The translations under genes and the position numbers were made by a program. Below are positions 48,273 through 63,170 of a DNA stretch of 64,000 nt, piece by piece. The stretch comes from Calcarisporiella thermophila CBS 279.70 (taxonomy: Eukaryota; Fungi; Calcarisporiellomycota): contig NW_027192199.1 in assembly GCF_041956535.1 (NCBI RefSeq), positions 186,001 to 250,000 of the forward strand, written 5' to 3'. Positions within the stretch are counted from its first letter, which is position 1, and each line of letters begins with the position of its first letter. The notes under the pieces were generated by a model. That model was not told the DNA's origin. It was given only the letters and a program-made list of their open reading frames with translations, and ran no database searches.

Positions 48273-49041
48273 ATGAAAAAAATTGTATTCATCGCCTTGT
48301 CGTCACTGGTAATGCTCTGCCAAGCCGTTCCTCTCCGTCGTGGAGTCGAATTGCAAGGGCTCTCTATTCCCGACGTGAACAACCTCCTTACGATGTAAGC
48401 AGCTTTTTTTTCGATTATCGTTATAATGATGAGTTTTGACTTGACCGCTTTCTTTTTCTGTTTCTTCTCATACTTATAGTAGGCCAAGTCAAGAGGCTGC
48501 TGCTGCTGCTCTTGCACCACAACCTCAAGCGCCGATGGCCGCCAATCTTGCTCAGCCAGTTGGTGCCTCAACCGCTCCTGCAGCTGAACCCAAACCCGAG
48601 CATCACCATCACCATCACTCGCATCACAAAGAGAACAAGAAGGGACGCAAAGTCGACAAACTTGCAGCTTATCGCGCCGCCACCATCGTGAAAAAAATCT
48701 CCGCTCAACCCGCCAAGTTTAACAGGAAGCGGCATGTCTTGATCATTCCTCCAGGTCAACTCGCGTACCAGGAATTCCAGAATGAGCACTCCCTTTTCCC
48801 AGTTCCTGAAAACGTCGAGGAAGAAAAGAAGGAAAAGAAGCGCGAGATTGAGAAGCGTGACGAAAAGCATCACAAGAAGAAGCACCACAAGTCCAATGCT
48901 GGTCGTGTCGCTCCAGCGACGGACCAGGCTGCTATCCAAGCCTCTGCGGTGGCCCCGGCCGCTGTTCCAGCAGCCCCGGCCGCTCCACCCGCCGATCAAT
49001 CCGGGCTACTGGGCGCGCTAACGAGCGGCCTGCATCTATAG
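48273..49041 (+). CDS. Secreted His/Lys-rich protein with multiple dibasic sites, 2 exons
   Basis: MKKIVFIALSSLVMLCQA-VPLRR; intron 48395-48479 (or 48482) joins in frame to ORF 48535-49041; EHHHHHHSHH, RKR, EKR. Confidence 0.78.
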
Positions 49042-50419: not shown

Positions 50420-51598
50420 ATGCGTACTTTCATTCTTCTTACCTTGGCTTTTGTTGGATCTGTGCTGGCTGCTCCTGTCAACGATAATACCTCAGGGGGG
50501 GTGAGCCAACTCCCGAAAACGGTCGATCAACCCGCCGCCGTGAGCGGCTGCTCCAGCATTGCTGCTGATGGTCATGGAAAGCGCTCCTGCCGACGGACCT
50601 TGAGTAAAGCTGCTGAATTGCAAGAGGATAGTTCCGTTAAAGCCGCTCCGGAGCCGCCAGTGGGGGGCCCCACTGCTCCTGCCGGAGAATCCACAGGAAA
50701 GACTGTCAAGAAATCGGATGGACAGCCCGTTAATAAGAAAGCCACAACAAAAGCGGTGGATGACGCTGATTCTACCGCAGAGGCCGGAAAACCTTCAGAG
50801 GTAAAGCCTGACGTTCACGCAAAAGAAAAAGTTCCAGCAGCAACCCCAAAGGATCAAACGACCGAGGAAATAGCTAAAACCCCCCAGACTGGGAAGATTA
50901 CAAAAGGAACATCTCCGGAGGCAGTCACCGAAGGGAATGCCGTGATTCCTGGAACCGGAAATACTGCTGAAAGCAATATCGCCGCTCCGGGAGCGACTGG
51001 GGAACCGGAACAAAGTGAGGCCCCCCCAGCAGGCTTGGGTGGAGATTTGGAGCAGACTGAGGAACTGGAAAAGCGTGAAGAGCAGGAGGAGGATTCAACC
51101 GGTGAGCCAGTCACCCCTGTGACAAGTGGATCCGAGCAGACGGAGGGTGAGGCAGAGTTTCCGCACCTCCACCGGCGAACTCACTCGTCGAAGACTACGC
51201 AAGCAGGAGCACCAGCAGGCGCAGGAGCAGGAGCGGAGAAGGAGAAGGCAAAGGCCGACACTGAGAAGGCTGCTTCGGCTCCTAAAGATACTGCTACACT
51301 CCACCGACGAACTCACTCGTTGAACACTGCGGGAGCAGGAGCAGGAGCGGAGGAGAAGGCAAAGGCTGACGTTGAGAAGGCAAAGGCTGACACTGAGAAG
51401 GCTGCTTCGGTTCCTAAAAATACTGCTACGCTCCACCGGCGAACTCACTCGTCGAAGGCTACGGGAGCAGGAGCACCCGCAGGAGCAGGAGTAGGAGCCG
51501 GAGCGGAGAAGGAGAAGGCAAAGGCTGACACTGAGAAGGCTGCTTCGGTTCCTAAAGATGCTGCTACGCCCAATGAGCCTAAGTCGCAGGGGCAGTAA
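50420..51598 (+). CDS. Secreted Kex2-processed repeat precursor (three LHRR-THS units)
   Basis: Signal MRTFILLTLAFVGSVLA-AP; KRSCRR, EKR and 3x LHRR sites; intronless 392 aa. Confidence 0.85.
   Translation: MRTFILLTLAFVGSVLAAPVNDNTSGGVSQLPKTVDQPAAVSGCSSIAADGHGKRSCRRTLSKAAELQEDSSVKAAPEPPVGGPTAPAGESTGKTVKKSDGQPVNKKATTKAVDDADSTAEAGKPSEVKPDVHAKEKVPAATPKDQTTEEIAKTPQTGKITKGTSPEAVTEGNAVIPGTGNTAESNIAAPGATGEPEQSEAPPAGLGGDLEQTEELEKREEQEEDSTGEPVTPVTSGSEQTEGEAEFPHLHRRTHSSKTTQAGAPAGAGAGAEKEKAKADTEKAASAPKDTATLHRRTHSLNTAGAGAGAEEKAKADVEKAKADTEKAASVPKNTATLHRRTHSSKATGAGAPAGAGVGAGAEKEKAKADTEKAASVPKDAATPNEPKSQGQ
51167..51570 (+). repeat. Three coding tandem repeats (~120-140 nt) with high nucleotide identity
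   Basis: ctccaccgNcgaactcactcg...gagaaggcaaaggcYgacactgagaaggctgcttcgg recurs three times. Confidence 0.9.
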
Positions 51599-52202: not shown

Positions 52203-52685
52203 TTATCTGCGATGTATTCGTCTAAATAGCTTGAGTAACTTATACATTGACCCTGCTTGTTCACTATCTTTAGTGCAATCATCCATTGCGTAAGAAGGGG
52301 GATTTATATCGATCTGTACAGTTTGCTCATCCTCCTCGCTGTCATTCAAAACGGCGGGGGGTGGGGGACTAAGCCTATATAATTCCTCGAGCACTTGCTC
52401 TGAGATTATCCGCACCTGCGACTCTGATAAGCTTCCCGACGTTTCATTGACTTCGCCATAGGCTGGAAGTAATTCCTTATCGTGTTCGTTCTCGGATGCC
52501 TCTCTGTTGCTTTGAACCTCTTGCATTCGTGTCCGAACGCGTGCTGCTAATGAGTTGAGAATCTGGCGTTTTTTGACAAGTCGGAGGTGTAGATAGCAAG
52601 ATATTATCAAAACAATGAATCCCATGCCTGCCCCGATGGATACGGCCGTCACGAACTGGGTGGGAATGGCAGAGGAGCTGCTCAT
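52203..52685 (-). CDS. Single-pass membrane protein with PY motifs (candidate Rsp5/Nedd4 adaptor or cargo)
   Basis: N-terminal TM VSIGAGMGFIVLIISCYL, basic stop-transfer, LPAY and PPSY motifs; TATATA run upstream. Confidence 0.65.
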   Translation of the reverse strand: MSSSSAIPTQFVTAVSIGAGMGFIVLIISCYLHLRLVKKRQILNSLAARVRTRMQEVQSNREASENEHDKELLPAYGEVNETSGSLSESQVRIISEQVLEELYRLSPPPPAVLNDSEEDEQTVQIDINPPSYAMDDCTKDSEQAGSMYKLLKLFRRIHRR

Positions 52686-54127: not shown

Positions 54128-54137
54128 GATATAAAAA
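54128..54137 (+). promoter_or_regulatory. TATA box of the 54346 gene
   Basis: GATATAAAAA ~215 nt upstream of ATG; CT-rich leader with (TTC)n at ~54305-54331. Confidence 0.5.
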
Positions 54138-54345: not shown

Positions 54346-56928
54346 ATGAGGAATTTGGCCTTCATCATCGGCCTTATCGGCCTTGCCAATCTTCCCCTGC
54401 TTCAAAGTGCACCTCTCCGTGAAAAACGCGCCGCTGACATGTCTTTTGGATCCATCTCCTCACCAGCCCAGGCGGTCGACTCTGAGGAGGGGGCCTATGA
54501 TGAGACTAGGCTACCCAAAACTCGGGGAAGGCTTTGGAAACGTGGTTTAATCGACGGTACGCTCAACAATCCCCACATTATCGACCACGTCTCCGCACTC
54601 GACACCAACATCAACTCCGACCCTCAGACGAGCGAAAATAACAATGCGAATACCCGCGCTGATGGATGCCTCAACAACGCCATCGGCCAGCACCAAAAGC
54701 GCCATGGTATGTGCAGGCGTAAAGTCGAAGGTACGGTGAAAGCGCCTGAGCAAGAAAACGAAAAGCGTGGGCTACTGGATGGATCTGCAAACAATCCTCA
54801 TGTCATCGATCATATCTCTGCACTCAACTCCAACATCAACTCCGACCCTCAGACGAGCGAGAACAACAATGCAAACACGCGTTCCGACGGCTGCCTCAAC
54901 CATGCCATTGGCCAACACCAAAAACGCCATGGAATGTGTCGCCGCTCAACTCCCGAGGCCAACAAGGAGAAGGCCACGGAGGAGAAGCAGGAGAAGCGTG
55001 GGTTGTTGGATGGATCTGCGAACAATCCTCATGTCATCGATCATGTCTCTGCACTCAACTCCAACATCAACTCCGACCCTCAGACGAGTGAACAAAACAA
55101 TGCAAATACGCGTTCAGAGGGATGTCTCAATCACTCCACTGGACAACATCAAAAACGCCATGGAATGTGCCGCCGTGCAGCTACCGACAGCAACAGGGAG
55201 AAAGTCGTGGAGGAACAACAACAACAAGAGAAGCGTGGATTATTGGATGGGTCAGCGAACAACCTTCATGCCGTTGATCATGTCTCCGCACTCAACACTA
55301 ACATCAACTCGGATCCGCAAACCAGCGAAAACAACAATGCAAACACACGCGCAGATGGATGTCTCAACAACGCAATTGGTCAGCATCAGAAACGCCATGG
55401 AATGTGCCGCCGTTCTCACAACAACACCAACCCCAACACTAGCGCCAAGAAAGAAAGCACCAAGAAGGAGAGCGAGAAGGTCGTGGAAGAGAAGCAGGCG
55501 AAGCAGGAAAAGCAGGAAAAGCAGGAAAAGCAGGAAAAGCAGGAAAAGCAGGAAAAGCGCGGGCTCTTGGATGGTTCAGCCAACAATCTTCATGCCGTGG
55601 ACCATGTCTCTGCACTTAACACCAACATCAACTCCGATCCTCAGACGAGTGAAAACAACAACGCAAACACCCGAGCGGATGGATGCCTCAACAATGCCAT
55701 CGGCCAACACCAGAAGCGCCATGGGATGTGCCGACGAGCCACCACCGAGCAACCCAAGGTAGAGGCGGTGGAAGAGCACGAGAAGCGCGGGGTTTTGGAT
55801 GGGTCCGCCAACAATCTGCAGTTGATCGACCACGTCTCGGCTCTCAACACCAACATCAACTCGGATCCCCAGACGACGGAGAATACCAACTCAAATACCC
55901 GTGCGGACGGCTGCCTCAACAACGCGGTGGGTCAGCATCAAAAGCGCCATGGCATGTGCCGACGTGGACTTGTGGATGGCTCGGCCAACAACCTGCAGCT
56001 GGTGGACCATGTCAAGGCTCTCGACACCAACATCAACTCGGATCCTCAGGTCGCCGAGAACACCAACGCCAACACTCGTGCTGAAGGCAAGGGAAACAAT
56101 GCGATCGGTGAACACCAAAAGCGCGGGCTCCTCGATGGGACACTGAACAACTTGCAACTGATCGACCACATCACCGCTCTTGACACCAATATCAATTCCG
56201 ACCCGCAGGTCGCCGAGAACACCAACTCCAACACTCGCTCTGATGGATGCTTAAACAACGCGATTGGTGAACACCAGAAGCGGACATGTCGCCGTGGCCT
56301 GGTCGATGGCACATTGAACAACCTCCAACTCCTTGATCATATCGATATTTTGACGACCAACATTAACTCTGATCCCCAAGTTGCGGAGAACACCAACTCC
56401 AACACGCGTTCCGACGGCACCCTTAATCATGCTATCGGCGAGCACCAAAAGCGTGGTCTATTGGATGGTTCTGCGAACAATCCTCATGTCATTGACCATG
56501 TCTCTGCACTCGACACCAACATCAACTCCGATCCACAAACTGCAGAAAGCAACAATGCCAACACTCGATCATCAGGTAAACTGAATCACGCCACCGGACA
56601 ACATTCGCGACGTGGGCTTCTCGATGGGACTCTGGGACAACCTCACATCATCGATCATGTAGACTTACTCAACACGCTCATCAACTCGAATCCGCAGAAG
56701 ACCGAGAACAACAATGCCAACTCACGCGCAGACGGGAAACTTAACAATGCCGTAGGTCAACACCAGCGCCGTGGGCTTCTTGATGGGACACTAGACAATC
56801 CGCACATCATCGATCATATCGGCCTTCTTAACACCAATATTAATTCCGATCCGCAGACGTCAGAAAACAATAACGCAAATACGCGCGCAGATGGCAAGCT
56901 CAACAATGCAATTGGACAGCATCAGTAA
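54346..56928 (+). CDS. Secreted Kex2-processed repeat precursor (KEP) with twelve 51-aa Asn-rich cores
   Basis: Signal MRNLAFIIGLIGLANLPLLQS-AP; each core (GLLDGSANN...NNAIGQHQ) is bounded by KR/RR or the stop codon; intronless 860 aa. Confidence 0.93.
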   Translation: MRNLAFIIGLIGLANLPLLQSAPLREKRAADMSFGSISSPAQAVDSEEGAYDETRLPKTRGRLWKRGLIDGTLNNPHIIDHVSALDTNINSDPQTSENNNANTRADGCLNNAIGQHQKRHGMCRRKVEGTVKAPEQENEKRGLLDGSANNPHVIDHISALNSNINSDPQTSENNNANTRSDGCLNHAIGQHQKRHGMCRRSTPEANKEKATEEKQEKRGLLDGSANNPHVIDHVSALNSNINSDPQTSEQNNANTRSEGCLNHSTGQHQKRHGMCRRAATDSNREKVVEEQQQQEKRGLLDGSANNLHAVDHVSALNTNINSDPQTSENNNANTRADGCLNNAIGQHQKRHGMCRRSHNNTNPNTSAKKESTKKESEKVVEEKQAKQEKQEKQEKQEKQEKQEKRGLLDGSANNLHAVDHVSALNTNINSDPQTSENNNANTRADGCLNNAIGQHQKRHGMCRRATTEQPKVEAVEEHEKRGVLDGSANNLQLIDHVSALNTNINSDPQTTENTNSNTRADGCLNNAVGQHQKRHGMCRRGLVDGSANNLQLVDHVKALDTNINSDPQVAENTNANTRAEGKGNNAIGEHQKRGLLDGTLNNLQLIDHITALDTNINSDPQVAENTNSNTRSDGCLNNAIGEHQKRTCRRGLVDGTLNNLQLLDHIDILTTNINSDPQVAENTNSNTRSDGTLNHAIGEHQKRGLLDGSANNPHVIDHVSALDTNINSDPQTAESNNANTRSSGKLNHATGQHSRRGLLDGTLGQPHIIDHVDLLNTLINSNPQKTENNNANSRADGKLNNAVGQHQRRGLLDGTLDNPHIIDHIGLLNTNINSDPQTSENNNANTRADGKLNNAIGQHQ
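55501..55557 (+). repeat. 9-nt coding minisatellite (aagcaggaa)x6 encoding KQE repeats in a spacer
   Basis: Read directly from the sequence. Confidence 0.92.
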
Positions 56929-57919: not shown

Positions 57920-60249
57920 ATGCCGTGTCTAGGATCTCGTAAAAAGAACAAAAAGGCCCTGAACATCACATCCCCAGATCTTATACGCACGCCGTCTGGA
58001 GCTTTGCGGCCAGGTTCGCAATCCTCTGTCGTACTGCCAAGTCAGCTCCGCTCACAGCGCACAAGTACTTCGCCGTCGCTTCCCCATTCTCCTCGTGATA
58101 GCGGCCAGCTGACCACCCCACCCACTAGCCTCAGCTCGGCTGGATTCCCATCTGGGTCATCTGTCTCATCGGAATCGCTGCCGGGCATCCCCGTGGCAGC
58201 TAAGACAACGAGCAGAAACCTGTCGGGATTCTCATTGAGAGGAGGGAAAATCCCAGCAAAGCAATTGAGGGCGGAATTCGATGAATTAAAAATTCAGGTA
58301 ATTGAATTTAATGAGAAGATGCTCGTGGGTTGGTCATTCAATTCGCTGAGTTATTATTGGTATAGAGCGAGGAGACCCTAAGGAAGCTTGCAGAGAACCA
58401 AGAGCTCCTTCGAACCCGCGAGGCTGAACTGGAGGCCCTCCGCAGGCGTCTCGAGCAAGAACAACAATCCCATAATTTACGTACTGAGGAGCTGAAGGCG
58501 TCCTCAGAAGAAGAGTCGCGTAAGCTCATTGCAGAACGTGACGCTCTCCTACGACAGCAAGAGGAGCAGATAACCGCTCTGCGCCAGAAGTTGGAGCAAG
58601 AGCAAGAGAAAAAAGCGGAGGAGGAACGCATCGCTCTGGATGAATTGGATAAGTTGAGGATAAAGAATGAAGAGACGCTCAGGCGCTTGGCTGAGAAGGA
58701 GGAGATGCTGCGGGTGCACGAGCAGGAGTTGGAGAAACTTCGCCTGGAGTTGGATGAGGAGCGAAGAGTGGCCATGGAGACGGTGGGTGAGGTTGAGGGG
58801 TTGAAAGAGGAGAAGGTGGAAGCACTCAGGAAGCTTGCTGAGAAAGAAGCCTTGTTAAGCACGCACGAGGAGAAACTCGATGAATTACGCCTGAAACTCG
58901 AGCAAGAGCGTGCGGAGGCTGTGGTCATGCCGGCACTGGAGGAGGTGAACCAGCAGCTTGCTGAACTGCACGAGCGTCATGAGGATTTGACGCAGCGTCT
59001 GGCCCAAAAGGAACAAGAGCTGGAGAATGTTCAGAAGATGCTGGCCTCGCAAGCCCAGCCTACGTTGGAGGTGGATGAGGCAAAGAAGAAGCAATTCCGT
59101 CGCCTAACGGTGGAGCTGGAGGCCGAGCGGGAGATGATGGCTCGGCTTGAGGAGCTGACGCAGGAGCTGGAGGCCCAAAAGCAGGCGCACGAGACCGCCC
59201 TTGCTCTCCACGAGCAGGTGGTGGCCGAGAAGGACTCCCTGCTCAGGGAACACCAGCAAGCTCTCGAGGAGATGCAGCAGTCCCACCAAAAGGCTCTCGA
59301 CTCTCTAGCGGAGAAACATCGTTTCGCTCTCGAGGAATTGCGGCGACGGCATCATGCCGAGATTCAGGAGTTAAATGAGCGCATCGAGAGATCCAAGCAC
59401 GAGAAGTTGGATCACGAGTTTGAAAAGATGCTGGCGGAATTCGAACAGACTCGCCACAACAACGAGGTCCAGATCGAGTCGCTCCGGGCTGACCAACAAG
59501 CCGAGCTCGACACGCTGCAGCAATCCCAGCAGACACAACTCGACTCCTTGCGCAAGACCCAAAATCGCGCCACGGCCCAGTGGCGCCGGCAATCCGCATT
59601 GTTCATCAAGCCTACGGAGGCGGTTTCGTGGCCTGCCCCGCAGCCCCTAAGCGTCCTGCGAAAGACTACATTGCGGCACGTGGAGCCTCCTAAGGAGCGC
59701 AAGATCACTGACGACGGATACAACCTCGACCCGGAAAGCCATCTTGTCCAGGTGTACATATCTTCGGTGAGCGGGAGCCTGACAATCAAACGGCAGCAGG
59801 AGGAGATCAGGCAGATGCTTGCAGCCCTTTCCATCCCATTCGAGGAAATTGACATTGCGGCGAGCGAGCGGGCTCGCAAGGTCATGCGCGAGCGAAGCGG
59901 ACTGAGAGAAGTCCCGCAGGTATTCGTTGGAGGAGAGTATCGCGGCTCCCATACCGATATCAAACAGGCGCAGGATTTGACAGTCTTTTTGCAGGCGCGT
60001 GCTCAGCGCAGGGAAAACGAGATGGGTCGGGGGGAGGCCAATGGATGCTCAGCACCGGCCCCCACTCTGCAGCAAAATGGGGAGCGCTCGCCTGTGTATC
60101 CTTTGAAGCATGGCCACGGGCGCGAGAATACCCCCTGCTCGCAAGAGGCTCACAACGACGCCACTGACGACGACCAAATGTTTCGGATGTTAGAGAAAGA
60201 GCTGCAAGAAGGAAAAGTGGATGCCGCGCTGGTCCTGGCAGATCTGTAA
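57920..60249 (+). CDS. Long coiled-coil protein with C-terminal SH3BGR/glutaredoxin-like domain, 2 exons
   Basis: Intron 58298-58365 keeps frame; heptad E/K/L-rich rod; VQVYISSVSGSLTIKRQQEEI...FEEIDIA...VPQVFVGGEYRG. Confidence 0.85.
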
Positions 60250-61335: not shown

Positions 61336-63170
61336 TTAGTACATTGGGCTATTATTAAAGCTGTGGTGCTGTTCCCTGTAATCGTGGAGAATATCTTCTC
61401 TCCACCTTCGCTCATGCATTGGAGATACTGCGACCTGCTGATCCAATCTACTATGGTGAGGCATTCTACGATGAGGTGAGAGTCTCAAGTCGTCGTCAAC
61501 CGTCAAGGTCAGTCGTGGAGGGGGCTGCAGAGTCTCTGCGTGATCTTCCGACCTGGTTCTCTCTGGTCTTTCCCTACTACTTGGAGTATGATCCATCGGA
61601 TCAGTGGAAAGTTGAGAGAGTTTCTGAGATTCTCCGGGTGTATCAGCGCTCAGGAGGGATCGCACATCTTCTATGGAGACTGATCGTAGATCAGCTGCAC
61701 TTGCATTTGAGCCTGAGAACGGCATATTCTTTTTGCTGAAGACCCAGTCATCCGGATTGGGTGGGGGTTGGGAAGTAATGGCATTCAATTCACGCTTTAG
61801 GACCCTGTATAATAAAAAGGTTATCGACAATGAAAAAAGAAATAGAGCAGCATGGTGGGGCTCACACTACTTACTTGCAGAAATCGTCAAGTGGGAGATC
61901 ATTCGCATCGTATCCAAATGGATCCTCTGAGAAAATAGAGCACAACAAGACAGTAAAGAAGTTAGAGGTACGATATTCGTTGGCACTTGAAACAGAGGCA
62001 GGGAGAGGGAGGAGGAGGAGGGGGGGAACATACCAATTTCTGCGCCAATGCTCTCAATTCCTAGGAGAATGAACGAAGTTACACAAGCCACGATGATATT
62101 GACTAAAGAAAGACCCCCGAGTTAACTTGGAATTTCACATCCGAAGCTTCCTCTTGCTTATCAAAGAGCTTTTACCATAGCCAAGGTTCACAAGTTGGAA
62201 CGGCAGGGAAAGACAGTAGATCCACACACATACGCGTAGATGAATGGCGTACGCAAATGGCATTGGCGTAGTCCGGACTCCTACACGATCGAAGAGGGGG
62301 TTAGGATTCCAATTTTCTTTCTCCCCCAAGGAACTTCTTCTACTGACTCTCAAAGCCTGCTAAACACTCTACCAAAGCGTTCAACAACGCGTAGAGATCG
62401 GAAATGGCCACGACGCTCGCTTTCTCTAGGGCATTCACCTCTCGGATGTACGAGCTTAAATAGTAGGAGATTTCCAAAGGGAGATTGCCTGGCGGCGGGC
62501 TATCCTCGCTCTTCTGTGCGTAGTACCACGGAAGATGGGAAAATTCCAAGGAGCGTGCCGCATCGGGGAGGTCTCTTAAGCAAGGAATCAGCTTCAACAT
62601 CAGAAGCCTCTTTTCCGAGGGGGGTTCTAACACGGCGGTATTTATAGCCGAACTCGAATACTGAGGGATATGCGCAAGTAGTTCACGAAGATCGTCGTAG
62701 TTGGTGCCAAACTCGGCGCGGAGGTAATGTTTTGTTGCGACAGCAAAAGCGAGCAGGAGGTTTATAGCGCCCTTCTTGGAGAGGACGTCCACGGCAGTCT
62801 CCTCGTCCACTTGCACCCAAATTAGGCGGGAAAAATTGCGTATAACCACTATCATAGTGCTCCAGAGACGCCGGCCCTCCCAGTATCTTAACGAGATGGG
62901 GGGCAAGAGAGGAGATAAAAACAGACTCAATCCATGACATGACATAGCTAATGGCCCATGTTATCCTCATGCTTACCTCTCATAGGCTATGTTAGTTCGG
63001 AAAACGAGCAGCAAGGATATCACCATACTGATGGTGGTGAGTAAAGAGGTGCCGATATTGAGGCTCACCGGCGTCTTCTGATCGATGAGGGTGACGGCAG
63101 TCGCGAACACAGTTACGACAATGGTGCCGGGAATATTTCGGGAGATGGCCGATGCAGTCCGCAGGAACAT
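61336..63170 (-). CDS. Bestrophin-family (UPF0187/YneE-like) anion channel, multi-exon; true start may lie up to ~63330
   Basis: ISLLLVFRTNIAYE-RYWEGRRLW, FAVATKHYLR, TPMPFAYAIHL, LLGIESIGAEI-EDPFGYDANDLPLD. Confidence 0.92.

Follow-up and report, generated by a model that had tools for sequence, protein, structure and literature searches.

What does the soil fungus Calcarisporiella thermophila make from one secreted precursor that holds twelve near-identical 51-residue peptides, and where did that peptide come from? The question is raised by a gene in a 64,000-nt stretch of the CBS 279.70 genome (contig NW_027192199.1, positions 186,001 to 250,000; hereafter, the window), whose features are collected in Table 1. 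The first-pass annotation had described the product as a signal peptide followed by twelve indel-free cores bounded by KR, RR or the stop codon, i.e., as a Kex2-type precursor, and had proposed for the released peptides a repellent-like, curlin-type amyloid role at the cell surface. The architecture was borne out: splitting the open reading frame at KR and RR yielded exactly 12 fragments of 51 residues, all with a Gly start and zero indels, behind a signal peptide whose cleavage site we placed by eye, without a predictor. The genome also contains six kexin-type genes, including two convergent pairs, so that by gene count the Kex2 family is expanded in this fungus. Judged by its architecture, the gene product is a KEP. 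The exact precursor protein was absent from the public protein collection searched.

Table 1. Features of the precursor gene (window coordinates) and location of kexin-type genes in the genome
Feature	Position	Strand	Remarks
TATA-like box, ~215 nt 5' of ATG	54130..54136	+	sequence; function inferred
Single-exon gene, 860-aa precursor	54346..56928	+	one open frame, no intron needed
Hydrophobic signal peptide, about residues 1-22	54346..54411	+	paralogs all begin alike
Pro-region with two KR sites	54412..54543	+	
Core 1, Cys42	54544..54696	+	45/51 identical to Streptomyces NBC_00775 peptide
HGMC mini-peptide 1, KR before, RR after	54703..54714	+	probable disulfide partner of core 1
Core 2, Cys42	54769..54921	+	its HGMC 54928-54939
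Core 3, Cys42	55000..55152	+	sole sequon; its HGMC 55159-55170
Core 4, Cys42	55237..55389	+	46/51 identical to Streptomyces P0051; its HGMC 55396-55407
Longest charged spacer	55414..55554	+	9-nt tandem repeat (QEK units)
Core 5	55561..55713	+	protein as core 4, 26 synonymous codon changes; its HGMC 55720-55731
Core 6, Cys42	55789..55941	+	its HGMC 55948-55959
Core 7	55966..56118	+	without Cys, without mini-peptide
Core 8, Cys42	56125..56277	+	its TC dipeptide 56284-56289
Cores 9-12, Cys-free	56296..56925	+	starts 56296, 56455, 56614, 56773; KR/RR the only joints; core 12 ends at stop codon
Kexin-type genes	G000 C5:1110032-1112179, C7:757755-759762, C17:258385, C19:558104		S8 + P-domain

The cores are identical to one another at 29-51 of their 51 positions, have masses of 5.28-5.50 kDa and pI values of 4.1-5.8, and contain 8-11 Asn each. 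Cores 4 and 5 are the same protein encoded with 26 different codons, all of them synonymous, and between adjacent cores synonymous differences mostly outnumber replacement ones, indicating an old array, kept by purifying selection, and not an echo of assembly. The annotated charged spacers are present; the statement that the later cores directly abut holds for cores 9-12, and fails for the 6/7 and 8/9 joints, where a mini-peptide intervenes. The 51-residue consensus itself stood, except that position 42, given as variable, is a Cys in 7 of the 12 cores.

These same seven Cys42 cores (1-6 and 8), and no others, precede a dibasic-flanked mini-peptide that ends in Cys and lies between the core and the charged spacer: HGMC after cores 1-6, TC after core 8, and nothing after the five Cys-free cores. 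In the whole gene family, 15 of 17 cores with Cys at position 42 or 43, spread over six genes, have a downstream partner Cys; in six other cores the tail itself holds a Cys pair, and 61 are Cys-free. The simplest reading of this covariation (Fisher p 4e-10, on cores that are not independent) is a probable disulfide staple spanning the Kex2 site. A Cys pair across a dibasic cut is reminiscent of insulin-like logic and of the yeast killer toxins K1 and K28, which are disulfide-linked two-chain Kex2 products; here, however, the second chain has only 2-6 residues and is optional, and the likeness is one of layout.

The five ORFs near the precursor, scanned for dikaritin-type RiPP tailoring (DUF3328/UstYa), encode secreted repeat proteins, a membrane protein, an SH3BGR/glutaredoxin protein and a bestrophin. 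One secreted protein (50420-51598, + strand, 392 aa, no Pfam match) has dibasic sites and three LHRR-delimited Ala/Gly/Lys repeats, with the same Cys...KR/xC-RR staple close to its N-terminus. A further secreted protein, encoded at 48273-49041 (+ strand), probably has two exons, which were read separately, and combines poly-His runs with KR/RR sites. The product of 52203-52685 (- strand) is a small protein that crosses the membrane once and has Pro-rich, PY-like motifs and a weak TMEM51 match. The coiled-coil protein with an SH3BGR/glutaredoxin domain (58591-60249, + strand) and the exon of a fungal bestrophin (62340-62945, - strand) support a fungal contig.

When the genome was searched with a core profile, we obtained 90 core matches at about 19 loci, representing about 20 genes, two of which are interrupted by assembly gaps; the top full-length matches of the precursor are also C. 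thermophila proteins. All paralogs consist of a signal peptide and cores with dibasic flanks, many of the cores bearing tails rich in His or Asp, and at 65 of 71 motif starts in the family KR or RR is followed by Gly. Some paralogs (L013; L028 at G000 C12:178-181 kb; P0001) contain half-cores with long His/Asp/Trp-rich tails, which suggests that the N-terminal half of the core may suffice alone.

The count of a single N-glycosylation sequon in the 12 cores, in core 3, was correct. As an argument for Asn ladders, its scarcity is weak: joint column shuffling gives p about 0.04, and the nearest bacterial relatives are also sequon-free. Among the paralogs, 26 of 53 cores have a sequon.

The annotation had implied a fungal family. 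Instead, HMMER searches placed the closest relatives of the cores in bacteria, and outside C. thermophila the core unit is single. It had no real match in Pfam, NCBIfam or the PDB (the Pfam matches of the precursor to TetR_C_21, DUF2095 and LAMB4 are repeat-summing artefacts), and literature searches, by text and not by sequence, found no description of the peptide family. Streptomyces species encode dozens of 74-77-aa proteins made of a signal peptide ending in A-x-A and then the core, often with exactly 51 residues to the stop codon; further actinomycete carriers are Nocardia, Kribbella, Phytomonospora and Actinokineospora. In cyanobacteria-like contigs the core stands behind a double-Gly leader. 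Single or partial copies occur in the fungi Orbilia, Dactylella and Crucibulum. In two plants, the grass Stipagrostis and the poppy Papaver, the core follows a signal peptide and an R-x-x-L site that we take to be subtilase-like. No core match was found in curated phages, nor in 401 Actinomycetota genomes beyond the seed genome. Some metagenomic relatives carry an extra C-terminal domain; in actinomycete-like proteins (P0018, P0113, P0119-P0125, P0145, P0147) the core is fused to one of two unmodelled domains, both about 80-90 aa long and each containing two paired Cys.

Across the family Gly1 is conserved at 94% and Asp4 at 100%, and the relatives are almost always cut to begin at that same Gly. 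One peptide appears to be freed at one residue by signal peptidase, by a C39 exporter at double-Gly leaders, by Kex2 and probably at plant subtilase-type sites.

The nearest relative is the Streptomyces NBC_00775 peptide P0051, which matches cores 4 and 5 at 46 of 51 positions without gaps; the best of the 15 fungal paralogs compared has 32 identical residues. It is scarcely credible that this likeness results from contamination or from convergence of low-complexity, Asn-rich sequence. Such an explanation could appeal to the short, compositionally biased 51-residue alignment and to the weak tree support, but 46 gap-free identities are far above what composition would give, and the fungal gene has eukaryotic neighbours as well as about 20 paralogs. 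P0051, for its part, is encoded with its own signal peptide on an 11-Mb Streptomyces chromosome, upstream of phage-tail genes, and the Orbilia and Papaver genes contain introns, meaning that they are eukaryotic. We therefore rejected contamination and regard the pair of explanations as largely refuted already. Moreover, synonymous sites are scrambled, only about 45% of the shared codons being identical between P0051 and the fungal core, and the GC3 of P0051 is 0.92, which argues against a very recent copy as well.

Other bacterial copies were found on plasmids, beside transposases and on viral contigs, and the bacterial loci show no conserved gene neighbourhood, except for P450 genes near four of them. 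In trees, whose support is weak, bacterial subtypes fall between the fungal cores, for which an AU test (53 rows and 48 columns, with rows picked after a first tree) rejects a single clade (p 0.0019). As read from these alignments, the interleaving would mean that the gene was transferred several times, that it moved in both directions or that convergence within the family was strong, and we assign no direction. Streptomyces also has a frameshifted copy of the gene with the promoter intact (L050:2699 and L085).

This patchy, mobile spread and the interleaving would also suit a soluble interaction peptide, that is, a bacteriocin-like antagonist, signal or decoy with a conserved target, whose fungal variants would match or mimic the bacterial versions. 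The retention of Gly1 and Asp4 through several processing routes points the same way, as does the cyanobacteria-like homolog P0025, whose gene is flanked by an NHLP-type HlyD gene and by that of a C39 peptidase ABC exporter, as in bacteriocin-type systems. However, the leader and exporter that P0025 has in common with double-Gly peptides apply to a minority of homologs, and we saw neither modifying enzymes nor a sign of toxicity. At the bacterial loci, neither immunity genes nor modifying enzymes are recurrent neighbours. The peptide is acidic and not cationic, and twelve near-identical copies suggest bulk output. Since a developmental sheath-type promoter (see below) also suits a structural role better, we consider the interaction peptide unlikely.

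What the Streptomyces genes share, without sharing neighbours, is their 5' end. The ATG is preceded, at a fixed spacing of about 7 nt, by an element GT(A/G)AC-N16-CGTTGA, which matches the consensus CGTAAC-N16-CGTTGA of the sigma factor BldN (PMC2375139), whose targets include chp and rdl (PMC12211087). The exact element is present in 12 of 29 distinct loci and its -10 box is in place in all 29, with a spacer that varies; a looser promoter pattern, for which there is no background rate, covers 26 loci. Scores of at least 9 out of 11 were reached by 16 of 32 loci, as compared with 1.6% of random windows, and the exact motif occurs just 3-12 times per genome. Among 20 exact-motif sites examined, a bldM-like response regulator follows one and a chaplin gene another, most others having no evident developmental link; the same element was seen at many chaplin and rodlin genes in the loci examined. 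On this evidence, the Streptomyces peptide is probably made from a leaderless message in aerial growth, alongside the hydrophobic sheath.

The promoters offer new and independent support for a coat role. The promoter is, on the other hand, a consensus match that another ECF sigma factor could read and that is inherited among related loci, and we count this against a coat.

The hydrophobic period of the core is near 110 degrees in residues 10-25, i.e., helical and not beta, and near 180 degrees in residues 26-47, so the core reads as an amphipathic half with a polar, beta-type half behind it. A beta-solenoid or cross-beta fold had been predicted. The AF2 model of cores 9-12 is indeed all-beta, with the same strand pattern every 53 residues, and a pattern repeating once per core is what an in-register stack would give; confidence is low (pLDDT 49), and a single Streptomyces peptide was modelled as a helix (pLDDT 54). 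In fold searches with the AF2 model, FapC and the CsgA fibril came out on top, in the company of generic beta-helices and at scores that are not significant (best Foldseek E 0.23; VIA Z 7.1, rmsd 8.8). In the Atlas, structure searches gave nothing useful, and the nearest named clusters, rodlin at 0.81 and chaplin at 0.79, are a lead only.

Of the proposed resemblance to curlins, the N-x-A-x-T-x-A-x-G-x-x-N-x-A spacing stands, and core 7 does read GKGNNA. Kinship does not: the Q-x-G-x-x-N-x-A-x-x-x-Q repeat of about 22 aa occurs in 0 of 181 cores, and there is no Pfam curlin match. Unlike CsgA and FapC, the core lacks the defining Gln, is a 51-residue unit with an extra amphipathic N-terminal half, and occurs as one unit per mature peptide.

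Rodlins are recognized by an NF041022 match, two conserved Cys and a mature protein of about 105 aa. The core has no NF041022 match, and its alignment to the rodlin profile, colinear and better than 150 of 150 column shuffles, reaches an HHalign probability of just 1-9%; we leave it as a weak lead. Rodlins and chaplins are likewise small secreted peptides behind BldN-type promoters, and the rodlins have in common with the core an L-x-x-G-[ST]-L-N motif as well as rough colinearity. Rodlin matches were present in 28 of 41 genomes, whereas only about 3% of Streptomycetaceae (9 of 301 genomes) carry the peptide. Chaplin membership was rejected (no PF03777 domain match, no HHalign match, score within the shuffle range), and so was hydrophobin membership, because the cores have 0-1 Cys and not the eight-Cys pattern.

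A close formal parallel is Rep1 of Ustilago maydis, whose 12 repeats, behind a signal peptide, are cut at Kex2 sites; the resulting peptides of 34-53 aa form amyloid on the aerial hyphae (PMC3133707). Unlike Rep1, the cores have bacterial homologs, a Cys-stapled mini-peptide and a family of about 20 genes. No Ustilago protein appeared among the matches in the core database searches.

Taken together, these data favor, with a probability of roughly 55%, a Kex2-processed polyprotein of a bacterial-type 51-residue peptide that would self-assemble on the surface of aerial hyphae or spores into a film or a coat of fibrils. By analogy, the coat would most likely work like Ustilago repellents and Streptomyces chaplins and rodlins, while lying outside those families. 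Since the core is up to 90% identical to a Streptomyces peptide with a sheath-type promoter, it is probably a new surface-coating peptide common to both kingdoms. In this respect the repellent-like role first proposed gained from the BldN-type promoters and from the polar, period-2 C-terminal half, and lost the curlin and sequon arguments.

In such a coat, Cys42 would bond in the ER with the Cys of the next HGMC or TC segment, the charged spacers would hold the cores soluble, and kexin would cut after KR/RR, with trimming by a Kex1-type enzyme, releasing seven cores as two chains, with the mini-peptide stapled on, and five plain ones. Once secreted, the N-terminal half with its hydrophobic pattern (residues 2-23) may adsorb to the air/wall interface, and the polar N-x-A-x-T-x-A-x-G half may build cross-beta or beta-solenoid fibrils by in-register stacking on Asn ladders. 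The module itself would have passed from kingdom to kingdom by gene transfer, with amplification in the fungus.

Against a coat we also count the acidic, hydrophilic composition of the cores (GRAVY -0.6 to -1.0), the helical periodicity of residues 10-25, the bacteriocin-type export system of one cyanobacteria-like copy, and the rarity of the peptide in bacteria, where it is accessory, unlike the core sheath genes. Hydrophobins are reported to be rare in Mucoromycota, in which we presume C. thermophila to be placed. We rejected the idea that the peptide substitutes for missing hydrophobins: the fungus has hydrophobin-like genes, so the peptide fills no obvious gap, which again counts against a coat. 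There were three PF01185 matches above the cut-off (G000 C25:89122, C18:373349-375051).

The HGMC staples and the His-rich and Asp-rich tails of many paralog cores could instead indicate a metal-binding or redox scaffold, in which the assembled core displays His/Met/Cys-rich tails (HGMC; in paralogs, poly-His and C-x3/4-C) as cell-surface ligands of Cu, Zn or Ni. We find this improbable as the main function, in that most bacterial versions, and five cores in the window, have no tail or Cys; it can, however, be an add-on compatible with the coat. One bacterial copy, signal-less and with a Met-Gly start (L127:6792-7341), lies 4 nt after an ArsR/SmtB regulator gene and divergent from an iron-type ABC transporter; this context would favor metal binding, but belongs to a single lineage.

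Still more improbable is a stress or water-interface protein, such as a desiccation shield or a small-subunit ice nucleator. The size (5.3-5.5 kDa) and the Asx/Thr/Ser-rich composition resemble those of a 5.3 kDa ice-nucleator subunit of Fusarium, and the carriers include a desert grass and a poppy. However, Glx is about 9% here and 19% in the Fusarium subunit (PMC10655213), none of our database searches retrieved a Fusarium homolog, and the size match may be chance. The host fungus, moreover, is heat-loving by name.

Returning to the coat, a more far-reaching version of it can be put forward only tentatively, and we give it less than even odds: an undescribed, horizontally mobile aerial-coat (functional amyloid) module. 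This would be a third class of BldN-controlled Streptomyces sheath peptide, which a fungus would have captured more than once, or exchanged both ways, and turned into Kex2 polyproteins in which a disulfide-stapled His/Met mini-chain is optional. Independent adaptation to their own processing signals would have taken place in cyanobacteria, other fungi and two plants, always with a free Gly start. If the coat is indeed amyloid, a solution to aerial growth would be transferable and common to bacteria and fungi, a case until now regarded as textbook convergence (chaplins and rodlins versus hydrophobins and repellents); at 90% identity, the fungal and bacterial peptides could even co-assemble or cross-seed. 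For most KEP peptides neither function nor origin is known. Here, a near-identical bacterial twin exists in a tractable genus, and its promoter predicts the timing, which makes the function testable in Streptomyces with ordinary tools.

The promoter searches also brought to light an unmodelled family of 63-67-aa secreted peptides in Streptomyces (L162-L184), whose gene often precedes a conserved one of about 390 aa. It is commoner in Streptomyces than the core peptide, with weak matches in about 70 of 401 genomes, and has the same BldN-type promoter position and a similar signal peptide. Its similarity to core residues 3-30 is weak (probability 17.5%), albeit above 200 shuffles. The family may be a distant relative of the core and, on these features, is a candidate for an overlooked sheath component.
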